DNA of 64,000 nt, from contig OZ059899.1 of assembly GCA_964057225.1 (NCBI GenBank), forward strand, positions 11,904,001 through 11,968,000, given 5' to 3'. Under the pieces are notes generated by a model. It saw only the letters and a program-made list of their open reading frames with translations. It was not told the DNA's origin and did no database searches. This stretch comes from Auanema rhodensis. Taxonomy: Eukaryota > Animalia > Nematoda. The translations under genes and the position numbers were made by a program. Shown here in pieces: positions 14,135 to 58,500 of this stretch (position 1 is the stretch's first letter; every line of letters begins with the position of its first letter).

Positions 14135-16421
14135 ATGGACAAATTGTATGAGCAGAGTGGTTCATTAAAAGATGAAGAAAAGCAAGTTGAGGTATGAATG
14201 ATAATAAGAATGGAAAATCAAACATTTTCCAGCTTTTTGAAAAATGCTTATTGAATGTTGCTCCCGGTAAAAACGAAGATATTAGAAACTTGGGCTGGTT
14301 AACTTTGGAACGAATGGTTCGAAGGTATGCATACAGGTTATGATAGTCATAGCGAATTTCTATTCTAGATGTACAACTCAAACTTTGAGAAAAGTGCAGT
14401 CTAGGTTGGCAAAGAGACTGCCTGATATATCAGCTAACCCAAATATATATTCAGGCTTATTTGTTCGTCAACTTTTGATTAAAAATCCTCAGGTATAAAA
14501 ATATTTTAAAAAATTATGTTTATCATTTTTAACTTTTGTTGTTTAAGGTTGGAGATTTACAAACACATGTTATAGATAAAATAATTTTTGATCTTTTGGA
14601 TGCTGGAATTTTTGATGATGATGCTAACATTCGGTTTAAAATATATTTATTTAATACACTGAATTTCGTTTTTTAGTGATCTAGCCATTGATATTTTCGC
14701 TATTCGACATGGAAGTTCCCAATCTGATAGAATTGTTGCTACTATTGTAGGATCCTTGAAAAATGGTTTAATTACACCTGAAGAGAGAATAGGTTTGTGT
14801 TAATTTAAAAGATTAGTTAAAATTGAAATTATTTGTCTTAGGAATGCTACCTTTGGGAGCGGTAGGCTCGAAAAAGGTTAGAGAGCAGTTGATTTGTGCT
14901 GCTATTGATTTGTTCGCACATTCTCTTAAATATAATCGTCAAGGTATTTTATTGTTTGAAAATATGAGATTTAAAATCTGAATTTAGGTTCCACTCTCAA
15001 TCGCGATAATATTTTTAATATGTTTGAAAAAACATTATCTGAACCTTTCTGCTACTCTGCTACTCTTAATGCTATATCTGCTCTCTGCTCAATTAGTAAA
15101 AATTCAATCTTACCATTTGTAAGTTATAAAATTTAAAAAAAATTGTAAATGCTTTATTTAGATTCCCAGATTAGTGTCCATGTTGGTAGTTAATTTAACT
15201 TCCCCTTCCGTCCAGTTGTTTGATACGATGACTGTTATTTGCGAGTTGTATGGTGCTTCTTCTACATTTTATAAGCATTTCTTTGTTATTTTTTCTGCTC
15301 TCAAACGACCATTAGCCCTACAGGTATGAAATCATGAGTTATGGAAAGCGTATGGTTCTTTTAGAGCTATGGAGCAGCAGCTGCGAATCTATTAGGAACA
15401 ATTATTAGGACTTCTGCTCCTATTTTAAAAGCTGAAGTGCTCATTTCTGTTCAGCGTACTATTCTTGAAGAAGCTGTACGTTCTGAAAACTTTGATGTGT
15501 ACGAAAGCGTGTTGGAAGCTATGCTGTCTAACAGTCATGAAGCTGTTCCTGTGCCAGTTCATGTTAGTTGCTTTTTTGTTATTATCTTCATGAGCTGCTT
15601 TTAAGATTGTACGAAACATTATTAATAGACAAATGTCTTCTAATAAGTGCAGATATTTGATTGCTCTATGCGACACCGTTACTCGTCCTCGTTTACAAGT
15701 TAGATATACATTCTCCCATTTAATATTAGCTTTTTTCTTATCAGAATTTAGCAGATTCAGTTGTTAGAAACTTAGCAGCATCAGAAACATCGGCCAATCG
15801 ATTATCGAAAGAAGTAAGTGCTTTCACAAATTATTTTGATTATTGATATTTTCTATTACTCTGTAGGATTGCTTAGAGGAGGAGACATTCCACGAGAAAG
15901 TTCAAAATGTACTCAATGAAGTAAGAGCGTTACCTGTTGAACAGCCTACTGTTATGACAATTGAAGACGAAAAAACCGAAGATGTTGTTGAAGTAGATGT
16001 AAGTGCTTTTGTTTTCTAAAGTTACGCTTCTGCTTAGTTCATAGTGCAACCGAGTTCAGGTACATGCTCTTTTGAAATTAAAGTTCCACGTGTCAGCAAG
16101 TTCACGTCACATTTATTCATTATTTTATATTTTTTTTAATTCTGAATAATCAATTTTATGCATTTTGAAGGTTATTAATGCTCCTGCCCCCGAGCCTGAA
16201 AAAAAGAACGCTACACCATGCCTGGTGCCTCAACAACCCAAACGTTCTGGAAGTGATAGTAATCAAGTTCCCTCTAAAAAGTTGAAGAAAAAGAAGAATG
16301 ACGCAGTTAAGGTAATTTTAACCAATTGAGTCTAAAATTGATTAAATTATTCCAGAGTACTGTTCTAAAAGCGGGTGAAGCATCTGTTGAGGACATTCTA
16401 AGTACTTTCTGTCCTTCATAG
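14135..16421 (+). CDS. PELP1/Rix1-like helical-repeat protein (rixosome scaffold), multi-exon
   Basis: Continuous spliced frame. VYESVLEAMLSNSHEAVPVPVH...LCDTVTRPR resembles the end of the PELP1 Rix1 domain (LLLAPSPRCPPP...CAALTHPR); acidic/Pro linker; C-terminal EDILSTF. Confidence 0.65.
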
Positions 16422-51929: not shown

Positions 51930-53145
51930 ATGATTGAAACGCTATTGATTACTTTTGAGCAAATTTATACTACAACTGAGACATTACGAAGAGGGTTACT
52001 CAATGTTTCTGATAAAATCATAAATCTGGGTGAACAAGCTTTCGGACATGTTGAACAAATTCAAAAAAGTATAGAGCCAGTTACATTAGATGGAATAGAT
52101 TATGTAGGATATTTGAACTTAATCTTTGAAAAAAACATTAGTATATTATATATATGTATAGTTAACAACAGCATGGAGTATGAAAGAGCCAGTAAGCAAA
52201 GTGAAATTAGAATCACGCAATATCATTGTGGAACATTATCTTTCTATCACAGTATGGCAATGTATTCTGAATCCCTTGTATGAAGTGTCAAAATTTCAGA
52301 CTTTGATTCTTGCTCTGATTTTCGGAGAAATGGCTGGTGTACTAACTTTTTCATATCTGCCTGATATTAGCATTATCTATCAGAGCATTGCATTTGGATT
52401 TCTCATAAGATATGCATATATACGTGTACACACAGGTATTTAATTTATATTTTTCTTATGTAGTAATTGTAATTATTATCAAAGCTCTTGATGAAATCGA
52501 ATGTCGCAACATTACTATAACCTTGGCACTTCTTTCGGGTGTTTTTATCGGATATAACATTGGCCCTAAGCTATTGAGTTTGGCACCAACATCCTTGTTT
52601 ATTTCTCCGTTTTTACTAGCTGTATCAGTATGTTATATTTTAAAACAATATCCTCTCAAAATATTTTATCAGATTGATAATAATTTTGTGAATAACGTCT
52701 TTCCTCATATGGATCGTCCATCGTTTTTAACTTTTTTGTCAACATTTTCAGCTATACTTAGCACTTCATCAGGTATCTTCTTAGGGTGTTTCTGAGACAT
52801 TTAAAATTCTCATTTACAGCATCTATAACCGGAAATGAATTTTCTGTCGCAATTTGCATATTATCCTTATGTCATTCCGTTATATTGGCTGTTCATACTC
52901 AGGTCTTTTGAAAATTTATTTTGAGCTCATCTAGTCAATTATTTTAAAGATTAATTTCCAACTTCTTTCACAAAAAGCATTCCGTGCTTATGAATCCCAA
53001 CTTGCTTATCTTATAGCCATCTGCATGCTTCAAGTAAGATTTTTCTTTTGTATCAGCAATTTCTCATATAGAACTACAACCAAGTAAATTCATTGTCTAG
53101 GTTTCACTAACATTACTCTTTGGTCTCAATCCCATCCTAAATTAG
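51930..53145 (+). CDS. Multipass membrane protein, possibly a divergent Bax inhibitor-1/TMBIM fold (about 8 exons)
   Basis: About 7 hydrophobic segments; RNITITLALLSGVFIGYNIGP and ILAVHTQINFQ echo the BI-1 R..L..FA...G...GP and VLFDTQLI motifs. Confidence 0.7.
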
Positions 53146-53696
53146 CTAAACATAGCAATAAATAGATGTTTTCATCAATCAACAAGCTCAATGTACAACT
53201 TTTACTTGAAAAATTCAAACAATCAATAAATAGTTTAAGAAGTTTAAAATTTAAAAATTTAAGAGACTTGGTAATAAATAAATTTATTGGAAACAAAAGT
53301 ATCTAAGAACGCGATATAATTCAAAGCAACGACGATGAAGGAGAGACAGAGGTGGAAAGTCGAACTTCACACAATATATAGAAATATTGGTAAAGATGAC
53401 GAAATAGGCCACATTTGAAAGCAATTCGAAAATTTTCTTATTAAAAGAGGAAACAAAGTTCAATAATCTTCTCATACGTGGCACACAATTGGTCCGCTCA
53501 AGAGCTGGCCGTGGGAAACTAGTTAACAATCACGGTGGGACTGATCTTGAAACAGAACAGTACAGAAGTAAAAAGCTAATCTATTTTAAGAGATAAATCG
53601 GATTGCAGTAGCTATAATAGAACAACTCGAAGATAGTAAGAGATAATGGTTGTTTAAGAGGGGGAAATTTAGATGTTAGAGAGATGAAAAAGGAAA

Positions 53697-53699
<3 letters not shown>

Positions 53700-53762
<63 letters not shown>

Positions 53763-53773
53763 GAGAGTGAGAG
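53700..53773. repeat. (GA)n microsatellite downstream of ppk-1
   Basis: Seen directly. Confidence 0.95.
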
Positions 53774-55117
53774 ATTTAGAGGGAGAGAGCAGAAAAGAGA
53801 GTAAGAATTTAGACAAGAGGTGGCTTCGGATGGTTCGTTTTTAGAGATACATGACGACTGCTCAGGCAAAGGCAGAAAATATTGTATATACTTGATACTT
53901 ACAGATAAACTATGAACTCAAAAAAAGAAATATAAAGTTAATATAAATGATTGTGCTACAGTTGACTACCTACAATTTATATTATAACTTATTAGGAACA
54001 TCTTCAAATACACAAATGATGATTCATTAGAACATGAAACATCTAACAACAGGAGTCAATATTTAAACACAACTTTTGTTAAATTACTAGTAAAGAGTGT
54101 GAAAAGAGGAATTTGGATATACGAAGAGTATTCAACAAGTGTAGTTACTACTAAAATAAATTAGTATACAATTCTATGAACATTTCTTGGCACGCGGTAG
54201 ATACTATCTCGTACCAATTAGGCATCACCGGATGTAGGTACCCTGTAACCATAAAGGAACTGCTTCGAAAATCAATATATTGAGATAAAAATTACTTTTT
54301 TTAAAATTTAGGAAAGATTATTGCATATATAAGGCTTTTTTAGTGGCTGAGTAGCTGTATAGCCCATGACCACGCAACAAATCACTTTTTGTAGTGCTTC
54401 AAAAAAGCTCATAGTGAGATTTTCAAAAAGCAGTTTCTTTACAGTTCGCTTTGGTGTCTAGATGGCTCCTTCCAAAAATGGATTGGACTTGTTTTCAAGC
54501 AAGTGTCTTATGAAATAAAGCTAGAGACAGTAGCAAATGTCCTTTTCATCAAAAGCCATTTCAAGAAAAAAGTCGAAAAAAACAAATTTTAACGCACCGA
54601 AACGTAAAGAATTCGCGAAATATAAATTAAAGGACTGTTTTTTTCATAATTTTTTTTCGAAATTTTCTTCTAAATTGACTATGGGCAGCCAGAGAGCTTT
54701 GGACCCCTAAAGGAAAGATGGACGAGGAAAGATGATCATGGAAATATGATTCAAACATGAAAACTTGGAATACGTGAATGGATCTGCTGTTTCATTTATC
54801 GTGCAATAAAGCATGTATGGCTTTTGGACAGAGAAGAAGGAAAAGAAGAAGGTAGAAGAAGTCGACGAGAGAGGCACACTGTTATTATATTATGCGTGCG
54901 CAATACACACAAGGAACGTTAGCCGCGACGGAAATGCAGGATCATGAAGATCATCATAGACGAGTCTGAAGGCACGATTATCGATCAGTGATTATTGAGA
55001 AAGAAAGAAATCCTTAAGATAGGGAGAAAACCAAAGAAGGAGAATAATCGGACTTCGGACAGGTACATCTACATGAACCATGGAAGAAAATGAAGATGCT
55101 TCAGCCAAGGCAGCTTG

Positions 55118-55318
55118 GGGCACTGTTTGGATGACTACTCTGTCCTAGTGGCAGAATGCTGTTATGCCCACCAGACTACTAATTACGGAATGGATTGGTT
55201 TAGAGTTTTTAGCCGTGTCAAAAAATGGATGATTTATTATAATTTTTAAAAATAACCAAGAATATCACCAATTTTATTAATTTGAGTTACAGGAGTCTAG
55301 TCATCCAAACAAGCGCCC
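55118..55318 (-). other. Long-range inverted repeat (RNA duplex) in the ppk-1 3' region
   Basis: 55118-55143 is complementary to 55289-55318 with a 14-bp perfect core. Confidence 0.8.
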
Positions 55319-55537
55319 GAGTTTGCATGCAGAACACTCAAATACCTTCTTCTTTCTGGCACTATGCGGGATTGTATACTGTGCGTTAGTAGGAGCATTT
55401 TGTGCAAAAATAAAAAAGGAGCAGATACGGGAGTGATTAATCGAGGATAATACAGAGAAACAAAATCCTAAAAGGGTACAAGCAGTTCTAGTTAGCTACA
55501 GAACTTAGGTTGCAGGATAGAACAAAACCCCAAACGA

Positions 55538-58500
55538 TTACAGCTGTCCAGGCGCTGGTCGTGTACTCACAATCTCTTCCTCTTCTTGCAGTGCTTCACG
55601 TTCCTCGGGCTTCGAGCTTGCAAACAATCGTTCGGTCTAAAAGAACAAGAAGAATAAAAAGGAATTAGGTAAAGATTTCAATATCAGGAAAAATGTATGA
55701 GGGAAATACCATGCATTGGTGCAAGATTAAAACTTGAGCACTTGCATAGCCCTTCGATTTCTTTTGAATAGAATCTTCACAAACCTTTTTTTCCTTCTTT
55801 TCCGCTGTAATTGTGTCCGCTCGATAAGAGCGTCGCAGAGGAACTCTGGTAACATTATTCTGCGGAATAATGGGATTGACATCTCGACTAGAGATAGGAG
55901 GTTCGTCATCTCCAACACTCTTCCGAGTACGCCGCCGAGAAGGCGATGATTTCAATGCTGAAAACAAAACGTATATTTTCTCATACACTTCTGTTGAAAA
56001 TAAATAAAAAAAACAATACAAGTGATAGACAGTACTAAAGAGCAACAGCACATTGGTACTACTTCATACACGACTTCCTTGGAGTATTCTACAGTTTTCG
56101 ATCGTTGGCATTAGGTAAGGAAGGAACACAACAAAAATAACGCTGTTTAAGTCAAAGTTCAACACATTCACGAACGGTATGAAAAGCACCACTGACACTT
56201 ATGTTAAAAAGCTTCCCGAAAACCGTTACTAAAGCACCCAATGAGCACACAATATAGAACGCTGATTATGTATTTAAATGAAAACTAAGTTCAGCAAACA
56301 TAAATAAAGAAATAGCATATCCATTTATACCCATAACTACCAGGGGTTAGGTTAGAAGATTGAAAAGGGTGAGAAGAACATGAATTACTATCGAATTGAC
56401 TCAAGATTATTATTCTCATAGAATGGGAACACTTCACACCAACGATACATTGAAATTATTGACACAACAATAAGATCTACTGTCAGAACACTTTGTTTTA
56501 AACTTAATTTTGAAAAAAAGATACCTTGAATAGAACGATGAAGACAAAAAGCACAATTCACGATTAAAGGAAGATTATCTTTCTTTCTTATTTAAAACTA
56601 ACGACATATAAGCGAACTGACAGGATGTTTAAAAGTATAAAGGATACCGAGGTATGAGTGGACGAGGGTTCGGAATTTCGCATTCGCCTTTCGATCAGCT
56701 GTAAACAGAGGGGGCACACTTAGGTTGAAAGATTAGAAGAGATAATTGTCATAATTTAAGCCCACACTCGGATTCTTTCAAAGAACATTAGCTTAATTAA
56801 TTAAAAAACACTTTTTAATTCAACACTCCGTTGCGATTAAGAGCACTAGCTTCCAAAATTAATTAAATCTTAATATTGGATAATGAATTCTCCTACCTGT
56901 TCCTTTTTTAAATATATGTTCTGACATGAAAGACAGAAAACGTTGAGCATAAAAGCTCGGGTTATGCACAGATATCGTGTCCTAAATCATGAATTCAAAA
57001 ATTATAGACATAACACAAAAAACTGACCCCATCATGGAGTATGGCCTTCCAGGTGTGCTCCATTTTTTTCAATAAGCGATAGTTTTGGAGAATATCAATT
57101 ATACCTGCACAAACTTGGGTAAAACAAAAAAAGAAGGAATCTTACCCAAATACAAAATGATTCGATCACCATTTTCGTTTCTAGCTGGAACACCGCCATG
57201 AGGAATTGTTCCTTCATCAGTATCCCAAACCGAAAACTTGGAATGAAGTGTCTGAAGAAGAGAGAGATCAGCAAAGATAAGATTGTACTGATTAAAACCT
57301 TTTTTTCACTATCTCGGCTAGTGCTTGGTTGGTCATCGCCGGCGCCATCGTCATCTTCACTCTCGACACGCTGTCTGGAGCCAGCAGCCAATTCCATATT
57401 ATGTATCCCAACTAGCAATGAATAATCCATAATTTTAAACGATTCCAAAACCTAAAGAGTTTACTGTGAGTATGCGCGTACGCTATTGATTCTTACCAAG
57501 CAATCGCGGCTGATAGTCTTCATCAAAGCATCTAAAGCTACTGGATCAACAAATAGTCCATCTTTATGGTTTTCCAAAAAATCGAGATCTTTTAATGTAG
57601 GATGAGTCTGCAAATAATTGTAAAGTAAACATAAAAAACGATGTTAAGAAACCTTAGCTCGTTCGTTCTTAGAAGCTGCTCTCTTGTACGTTGAGCCTTT
57701 TAAATCATATTTTTCATGCATGACAAGTGCTTGAGGTAACAAGTTGTTCATGACAAGCAATCTAATGTTTTTACCCAAGCTCTAGAAATATTCTTTGCGT
57801 AAACTTGTGATTAAATTAAGAATTACCTGATAACAGAACAACCCAAAAAACTTTGGTAGCAAAGTACGAGGATTTTGATTGAGATTCTAAATTAAGAACA
57901 TTCCAGATGATTTAATTGCTAAAACAGTTACCATATAATACCCAGGAAGCAGCTTTTGCAAAAATTCGGCTTCTTTATGTTGAACTGTTTTAATGATGAA
58001 TTGATCATCTTGAGATACATAGAAAATTGAACCAGAAGCTCCAGCATTCGATAATTCCCGAAGAGGTTCGGTACAAATTGAACGCTGGAATCGAAGAGAG
58101 GTATTACTAAACACGAAAGGAAGTTAATACCAAGAAATCAGCAGGTTTAATATGAAATAGTTCACGGAAATATCTGAAAGCAATTGGAGCATAGGTTTTG
58201 AATCGGAAATCTCCAAAAGAATGAGAAGGCGTCACTCCTGATCCTTGTCTAAACATTTTCTTTACACCTGTCATTTACGTTCAAACATACGCAGGAAATG
58301 CCACAGTTTCAATTTTTTGAAAATCTTGCAACAACAAATCCCTATTAGGCAAGGAAGCCAAACTTCCTATAGAATTAGCAATTCCTAATTGAATAGCGCT
58401 CATTAACGCATTTGTTGGAACTTTTTTATAGCTGACCTAAAGCAATTTCAACTCATTGAACCAAGTATGAAATCAAATAACGTACTTCTCCTTGCTCATC

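Follow-up and report, generated by a model that had tools for sequence, protein, structure and literature searches.

A hairpin-forming inverted repeat in the conserved alternative terminal intron of the ppk-1 gene of a rhabditid nematode

The DNA studied is a 64-kb stretch of contig OZ059899.1 of Auanema rhodensis (hereafter, the window). Its minus strand carries ppk-1, a type I PIP5K gene, the 3' end of which contains an inverted repeat; all coordinates are those of the window. The host is a rhabditid nematode, and the nearest available relative is Auanema sp. JU1783. The genome comprises 181 Mb in 112 contigs, and ppk-1 is single-copy there. For identification of the gene, one exon of the window was used as a query, and database proteins served for all further comparison. 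The query retrieved nematode type I PIP5K proteins, the nearest being P0152 of Auanema sp. JU1783, which carries Pfam PF01504. Identity of the window exons to P0152 was 73–95% per exon, and the PIPK domain encoded by these exons was orthologous to nematode PPK-1. Among the papers covered by a literature search, we found no treatment of PPK-1 C-terminal isoforms or of RNA structure at this locus.

Two further data sets were used. RNA was represented by assembled Logan contigs from four public runs, all from one study. Nine ppk-1 loci were compared: those of the window, Auanema sp. JU1783 (locus L017, reached via protein P0268), P. fissidentatus, D. pachys, N. americanus, A. duodenale, C. remanei, C. 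angaria, and M. spiculigera.

An earlier interpretation of the letters of the window (the sequence-only reading) had proposed that at least three C-termini of the kinase are chosen by competing RNA folding: a GTGAGT donor at 55570 would be joined to one of two last exons, A and B, the stop codon of A being covered by the 5' arm of the repeat and the start of B by its 3' arm. The elements it described are in place: the arms at 55318–55289 and 55143–55118 of the minus strand, TACTAAC at 55391–55385, the AG at 55380–55379, the open reading frames (ORFs) of exons A and B, and both UGCAUG motifs. The donor also proved to be what had been suggested, a phase-0 alternative donor, conserved in 9/9 loci and with isoforms annotated in relatives. 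Its partners, however, are other than had been supposed. Judged by conservation, GTGAGT at 55570 is a genuine alternative donor whose predicted partner is a micro-exon at 54965, encoding threonine, arginine, leucine, and a stop (the TRL-stop exon), which the sequence-only reading had not noticed. The 3' end of the gene, and of its untranslated region (UTR), comprises the following features.

55785–55957, minus strand: penultimate coding exon, ending ...AEKKEKK; GT..AG joints 55957/56897 and 55636/55785 in four runs; 73% identical to residues 416–489 of P0152.
55637–55784, minus strand: 148-nt intron with a conserved UGCAUG at 55715–55710; joint in four runs; ATGCATGGT is an island aligned to JU1783, the rest being poorly conserved.
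55571–55636, minus strand: last coding segment common to all isoforms, 22 residues, with both boundaries in phase 0; shares 94% identity with the C-terminal segment of P0152.
55565–55570, minus strand: alternative 5' splice site GTGAGT; GTGAGT or GTAAGT at the same codon boundary in 9/9 nematode loci; unspliced in the contigs of this species.
55538–55570, minus strand: read-through tail of 10 residues and TAA stop; continuous contig; tail identical in P0152 of JU1783.
54966–55570, minus strand: alternative terminal intron of 605 nt, containing the whole repeat; retained in the assembled mRNA and spliced in the TRL isoform of relatives.
55385–55391, minus strand: TACTAAC, a match to the STAR-protein or branch-site consensus; CTACTAACGCACA is identical in JU1783 at 13/13 positions.
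55326–55331, minus strand: UGCAUG (Fox-1/ASD-1-type motif), 8 nt 5' of the stem; 240 nt past the donor here and 228 nt past it in JU1783.
55289–55318, minus strand: 5' arm of the inverted repeat, GGGCGCTTGTTTGGATGACTAGACTCCTGT; absent from the JU1783 locus.
55118–55143, minus strand: 3' arm of the inverted repeat, ACAGAGTAGTCATCCAAACAGTGCCC; in the 181-Mb genome, the 14-mer core is confined to the two arms.
55233–55278, minus strand: two canonical AAUAAA hexamers (55278–55273 and 55238–55233) in the AT-rich loop of the repeat.
55301–55378, minus strand: candidate exon A with the ORF YTIPHSARKKKVFECSACKLGRLFG and stop; unsupported (no RNA joint, poor acceptor, AG and peptide unconserved).
54992–55144, minus strand: ORF of candidate exon B; unsupported (no RNA joint, poor acceptor, 5' part unalignable, indels in the 3' part).
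54954–54965, minus strand: TRL-stop micro-exon, ACT CGT CTA TGA, with acceptor ccttcag (54966–54972); conserved in 9/9 loci.
53737–54953, minus strand: 3'UTR common to both isoforms, within the extent supported by the contigs; these reach 563–567 nt below 54300; blocks conserved with JU1783 include 53330–53273 with AATAAA.

The locus was present in the four runs as spliced contigs with an identity of at least 99%, which are therefore RNA of this organism; eleven GT..AG joints in them defined the exons of ppk-1. In each run, one contig joined 55785 to 55636, was then continuous from 55636 to 54300, and extended for about 565 nt beyond. Its depth through the 55570 region (55–88) was comparable to that of the upstream exons (42–93), and the contig is therefore not a pre-mRNA trace. 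No joint starting at 55570 was found in the contigs of the four runs. Since the contigs are unbroken past 55570, the region of the repeat is a retained intron, or 3'UTR, of the assembled mRNA. This mRNA reads through GTGAGT, and its ORF ends with the read-through tail (55570–55538), which was the expected outcome of leaving the donor unused. The dominant mRNA is the intron-retaining form. All RNA contigs stop at a long (CT)n run in the 3'UTR of ppk-1 (~53700–53770, minus strand), and the 3'UTR distal to this run therefore has no contig coverage. The shared 3'UTR probably continues to a conserved distal AAUAAA at 53288.

The alignment of nematode PPK-1 C-termini ended precisely at the codon boundary of the 55570 donor. 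Beyond it, three classes of C-termini were distinguished: read-through tails of the type "VS...", three-residue tails THL or TRL, and a long tail in strongylids. The read-through class included EEIVSGDATTA of Caenorhabditis and EFVSKPMSGQL of hookworms as well as the tail of Auanema; the hookworm VSKPMSGQL, which is followed by a stop, was similar to the read-through tail of the window. Tails THL and TRL were found in Pristionchus, Parascaris, Plectus, and strongylids. A word search with the C-terminal region of a Pristionchus protein gave matches confined to Pristionchus.

In the window, gaagagatt is followed by GTGAGT at 55570; this is a GTRAGT donor in phase 0 that immediately adjoins the acidic EE[IFV] end of the ERLFA exon. 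Scanning downstream of the donor revealed ccttcag followed by ACTCGTCTATGA at 54965, which reads ACT CGT CTA TGA in phase 0, i.e., TRL and a stop. The same combination, a GTRAGT donor after EE[IFV] and a T[RH]L-stop exon with a good acceptor in front of it, was present in 9/9 loci. Of the seven free-living species, six had 360–766 nt of intron between donor and exon, and D. pachys had 1124 nt; in hookworms, this intron was 2.2–2.9 kb long. TRL or THL isoforms were annotated in 6 species, and both C-termini in Auanema sp. JU1783, C. briggsae, C. nigoni, and Pristionchus. The annotated isoforms of JU1783 (CAI4229942/43/44) comprised a 520-aa form with the read-through tail and forms of 513 and 530 aa ending with ...ITRL. 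Those of C. briggsae and C. nigoni had 628/623 and 613/608 aa. N. brasiliensis had a TRL form and a long-tail form, H. contortus had TRL, and P. pacificus had THL and VVSGV. Thus, the window resembles the annotated PPK-1 isoforms of relatives in the phase-0 donor after EE[IFV], in the "VS..." tail, and in the T[RH]L-stop exon. That the gene family has alternative C-termini, as the sequence-only reading had supposed, is borne out by these annotations. The event is retention versus removal of the 605-nt terminal intron (55570–54966), with a shared downstream 3'UTR; it is an ordinary one, already annotated in relatives.

A third tail exon (I[LF]LEREPSMT.SSLLLDEIPFID...QQS and stop) was observed in hookworms between the donor and the TRL exon (L012 16767 and L013 13133, N. 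americanus and A. duodenale, respectively); strongylids therefore do have three C-termini. No homolog of this exon was detectable in the window.

The locus of Auanema sp. JU1783 has the same donor and acceptor, with an intron of 360 nt versus 605 nt in the window. The ends of the intron (55641–55444 and 55039–54951) were each ~81% identical to JU1783, and tcgataatcgtgccttcag together with the adjoining ACTCGTCTATGATGA, i.e., the TRL acceptor and the exon stretch, was identical in both. The middle 404 nt (55443–55040), which include the repeat together with the larger part of both candidate exons, had no significant match to the corresponding 163 nt of JU1783, and both arms were absent from the JU1783 locus. 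The best duplex in the JU1783 intron (−22.5 kcal/mol) was close to the shuffle mean (−23.6). The window intron thus differs from that of JU1783 by a 201-nt segment bounded by the 26-bp inverted repeat, and the TRL junction, annotated in JU1783, is a predicted one in the window. The repeat, searched for both as a 241-nt element and as its 14-mer core, was found at one place in the 181-Mb genome. Without 55318–55118, the intron would measure 404 nt, a length similar to that in JU1783 (360 nt), which fits a lineage-specific insertion or inverted duplication of ~200 nt as the probable origin of the repeat. It shares with miniature inverted-repeat transposable elements (MITEs) and foldback elements a size of ~200 bp, terminal inverted repeats of 26–30 bp, an unrelated AT-rich interior, and absence at the sister site. 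Unlike them, it is single-copy in 181 Mb and has no target-site duplication at the ends of the arms, and assignment to a transposon family of this kind was rejected for these reasons. A palindrome spanning the whole element was rejected as well: the 145-nt interior contained no palindrome and folded no better than shuffles.

The stem itself is real and far beyond chance. The arms carry a perfect 14-nt core and pair over ~26 bp in total with a duplex energy of −39.5 kcal/mol. Among 4261 segments scanned on the minus strand of the window, the repeat ranked first (next non-repeat value, −33.4), and none of 60 dinucleotide shuffles of the intron reached its energy (−26.4 ± 2.7; z about −4.8). It is, however, not the near-perfect 26-mer that had been described: 6 bp with one G-U pair are followed by a 1-nt bulge, 14 bp, a 2-nt internal loop, and ~6 weaker bp, and the loop at the apex is AT-rich and ~145 nt long. 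The G-U wobble, taken by the sequence-only reading as a mark of the transcribed strand, is present; as an argument it is weak because the opposite-strand duplex reaches −37.1 kcal/mol, a difference of just 2.4 kcal/mol. In the fold of 55400–55100, the arms paired in both the minimum free energy and the centroid structures, but the 301-nt region as a whole folded no better than shuffles (z = −0.94). The nested hairpin said to bury the AG of exon B also exists but is modest (−10.5 kcal/mol). A single pairing dominates: the second-best partner of the 3' arm gives −31.4 kcal/mol including large loops, and no competing, mutually exclusive pairing was found, the core 14-mer being restricted to the two arms in the whole genome. 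A search against Rfam gave no credible match to the repeat; its lone hit, far under the gathering score, lay outside it at 54284–54463.

Nor is the stem shared between species. A stem above chance was found in the same intron neither in JU1783 nor in C. remanei, and the stems of P. fissidentatus (−34.9 kcal/mol) and C. angaria (−36.7 kcal/mol) there beat shuffles yet were no outliers at their own loci. A structure conserved across species was therefore rejected, and no covariation of the arms was found. The alternative intron of A. duodenale contained a near-perfect inverted repeat of ~36 bp (L013 ~14284–14496; −64.6 kcal/mol), which shows that strong stems, probably derived from transposons, accumulate in this intron in other lineages too.

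Exons A and B were not supported. The two junctions by which their use was to be recognized, from 55570 to 55378 and to 55144, were absent from the contigs of the four runs. The acceptors (aacgcacag for exon A and tgccactag for exon B) lacked the T-rich positions −7 to −3 found in 11/11 RNA-verified ppk-1 acceptors; the TRL acceptor has a T-rich tract like the verified ones. TACTAAC as the branch site of exon A would lie only ~7 nt from its AG. The CAG of exon A was CAT in JU1783, and the downstream peptides were unrelated. In the ORF of exon B, the 5' part was unalignable, and the alignable 3' part contained indels of 5 and 6 nt relative to JU1783. None of the three annotated JU1783 isoforms used an exon like A or B. 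Homology of the exon B peptide to ortholog tails was rejected (20 tails; lowest p = 0.01, with Aphelenchoides, non-significant after correction), and so was that of the exon A peptide, the low-p matches of which (P0195, P0171, and P0179) rested on the KKKV lysine run and a short RLF match. We take exons A and B to be ORFs that occur by chance after weak AG dinucleotides.

Conserved short motifs were found in the intron outside the stem. TACTAAC occurred 164–204 nt past the donor in four species of three lineages (window 55385–55391; L017 ~9076; L010 ~14249; L015 ~10800), including P. fissidentatus and C. angaria, with ~0.04 copies expected per intron. In each of the four species, an AG followed within 6–14 nt, and C. 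angaria contained UACUAACUAAC plus further CUAAC copies. UGCAUG is a Fox-family site. It was conserved with JU1783 at two places, ~235 nt past the donor and in the upstream intron (55715–55710); in the alternative terminal intron, it was absent from the other free-living species examined. The two islands flank the last common exon, which suggests a possible control by a Fox-family protein (ASD-1/FOX-1). The STAR-binding hexamer UACUAA is part of UACUAAC (PMC2905418), which both SF1 and QKI read and for which they compete (PMC13004596). The recurrent TACTAAC could represent either a conserved but weak 3' splice site or binding sites of STAR proteins (GLD-1, ASD-2). Compared with response elements of STAR (GLD-1/ASD-2/QKI) and Fox-1/ASD-1 proteins, the window is similar in having UACUAAC and UGCAUG as conserved islands in a diverged intron; its sites are known as motif matches and are positioned outside the stem. 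As candidates for regulating the choice of isoform, the conserved UACUAAC and UGCAUG more plausibly qualify than the stem.

Between the stop codon and position 53000, there were three canonical AAUAAA signals: two in the loop of the repeat and one distal (53283–53288), the latter conserved with JU1783. The two in the loop are the only ones of the 605-nt intron. No AAUAAA was found in the same intron of JU1783, P. fissidentatus, C. remanei, C. angaria, or M. spiculigera.

In our opinion, which we hold as fairly probable, the repeat is a lineage-specific hairpin of unproven function, located in the non-conserved middle of the conserved alternative terminal intron of a type I PIP5K gene. If the 55570 donor is not used, the protein would end with the read-through tail and its stop, while the intron, the TRL exon, and the downstream sequence would become a 3'UTR of ~2 kb, which is the form seen in the contigs. 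If the donor is used, it would be joined to the acceptor at 54966/54965, and the protein would end with TRL and a stop, as the conservation in nine loci and the isoforms of relatives indicate. The repeat would fold on itself and loop out the AT-rich segment of ~145 nt. Its effect would most likely be passive, the extra 200 nt being kept aside, with an effective intron of 404 nt versus 360 nt in the sister species. The choice of isoform would more plausibly be governed by conserved linear elements, namely the UGCAUG motifs that flank the last common exon, the UACUAAC located ~180 nt inside the intron, and the acceptor block, which is invariant. The repeat is taken to be dispensable for this choice because both isoforms exist in JU1783, the 360-nt intron of which lacks the stem.

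Several points weigh against this interpretation. Minor variants are lost from Logan contigs, which reveal neither 3' ends nor local depth, and the four runs share their study of origin. The TRL junction was not found in the contigs of this species in any of the four runs, from which the assembler drops minor variants. Exon A, exon B, or the TRL exon may therefore be used in this species at a low level or in particular tissues. A real weak 3' splice site may be located near the position of exon A, as TACTAAC followed by AG recurs in three lineages. With two species compared and no outgroup, the repeat may have been gained here or lost in JU1783. Finally, the stem is strong, has a conserved UGCAUG beside it, and encloses both AAUAAA of the intron, so that it could have come to serve a species-specific function.

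One such function would be that of a clamp, hiding or looping out the two AAUAAA and bringing the UACUAAC/UGCAUG block near the acceptor, so as to preserve both read-through to the distal poly(A) signal and TRL splicing. The position of both intronic AAUAAA in the loop, with none in the same intron of five other free-living species, is consistent with it, as are the conservation of the distal AAUAAA at 53288 with JU1783, the read-through of the RNA contigs across the loop, the intron of 404 nt (360 nt in JU1783) left by a closed stem, and the stem energy far beyond chance. Contigs, however, cannot show cleavage sites, AAUAAA in AT-rich sequence is often silent, and the inverted repeat may simply have come with the inserted segment; we regard the clamp as unlikely. 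Slightly more doubtful is the evolutionary scenario that would go with it: a recent insertion of ~200 nt would have brought two AAUAAA into an intron that nematodes otherwise keep free of poly(A) signals, and its own 26-bp repeat would be self-insulating, preventing premature polyadenylation, restoring the spacing, and preserving both C-termini. The stem could also be a platform of double-stranded RNA within the 3'UTR of the dominant, intron-retaining mRNA, where a bound protein of the Staufen or ADAR type would affect stability, localization, or editing of that isoform only. It lies ~220 nt past the stop codon of the assembled mRNA, is longer, with its 20 solid and 6 weaker bp, than the ~19 bp looked for in such a site, and has an apex of ~145 nt, a geometry resembling that of the Staufen-binding site of mammalian ARF1. 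The contigs, which hide partial editing, had no base differences, and the stem is absent from the sister species; such a role seems to us quite improbable.

Least probable by far is the switch of the sequence-only reading, according to which A (55378) and B (55144) are real last exons and the stem switches between them, giving three C-termini. The coordinates, phases, and ORFs given for it are correct, the donor is indeed an alternative one, the TACTAAC with a nearby AG recurs in three lineages, and hookworms do have a third tail exon in the middle of the intron. Nevertheless, RNA joints to both exons are missing in the four runs, the acceptors have no T-rich tract, and the branch A of TACTAAC is just ~7 nt away from the AG of exon A; this AG is not kept in JU1783, the alignable part of exon B shows a frame-breaking indel, no ortholog tail matches after correction, and no JU1783 isoform contains such an exon. 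The switch also ignores the conserved TRL exon. Two of the three outcomes named beforehand as speaking against it were observed: neither exon is used in transcripts, as far as the assembled contigs show, and the arms show neither conservation nor covariation, being absent from JU1783, which has both isoforms annotated.

RNA structures are known to control splicing, e.g., the docking/selector pairs of Dscam exon 6 and 14-3-3-zeta and the stem at MAPT exon 10. The window is similar to these in having an intronic stem in an alternatively processed region, one arm of which overlaps AG dinucleotides. It differs in that its stem has no competing pairing, its arms are unconserved, and the exons claimed for it are unused in the assembled RNA. 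The switch as proposed would have been a rare nematode case of RNA folding choosing the last exons of a key kinase synthesizing phosphatidylinositol 4,5-bisphosphate (PIP2); the evidence does not support it. The locus shows instead that a strong and statistically significant stem can be lineage-specific and needless for the neighboring splicing choice, which calls for caution with structure-first readings of introns in this genome.

The gene model of ppk-1 should carry two C-termini, the read-through tail and TRL. The TRL exon, having three codons, is easily overlooked, though it is conserved from Plectus to Caenorhabditis. Mammalian PIP5K1C (PIPKI-gamma) has C-terminal splice variants, the isoforms of which differ in a short tail with a possible protein-docking motif. 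The gene of the window is likewise a type I PIP5K with isoforms differing only in a short C-terminal tail; in contrast to PIP5K1C, the sequences and the exon structure are unrelated, one isoform arises by retention of the last intron, and the other has a three-residue tail T-R/H-L. By its sequence, the TRL tail looks like a class I PDZ ligand (S/T-x-hydrophobic-COOH). This PDZ-like end leads to the testable idea of isoform-specific localization of PIP2 synthesis, and the UGCAUG and UACUAAC islands point to Fox- and STAR-family proteins as candidate regulators.

Two other observations were made on ppk-1 products. In C. briggsae, 926-aa products (P0277, P0281) shared a 90% cluster with the 306-aa proteins P0270–P0272; judged by size, they may be PPK-1 fused to the 306-aa product of a neighboring gene, by read-through transcription or as an annotation artefact. 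Two of the four RNA runs contained, at low depth, a contig in which a 51-nt cassette exon of the window (56648–56698, minus strand) was joined 56897/56698 and which continued through the downstream intron. The peptide encoded by this exon matched a 17-aa insert of the JU1783 isoform P0268, and P. pacificus has HKFRSLVHSYMALK at that place.

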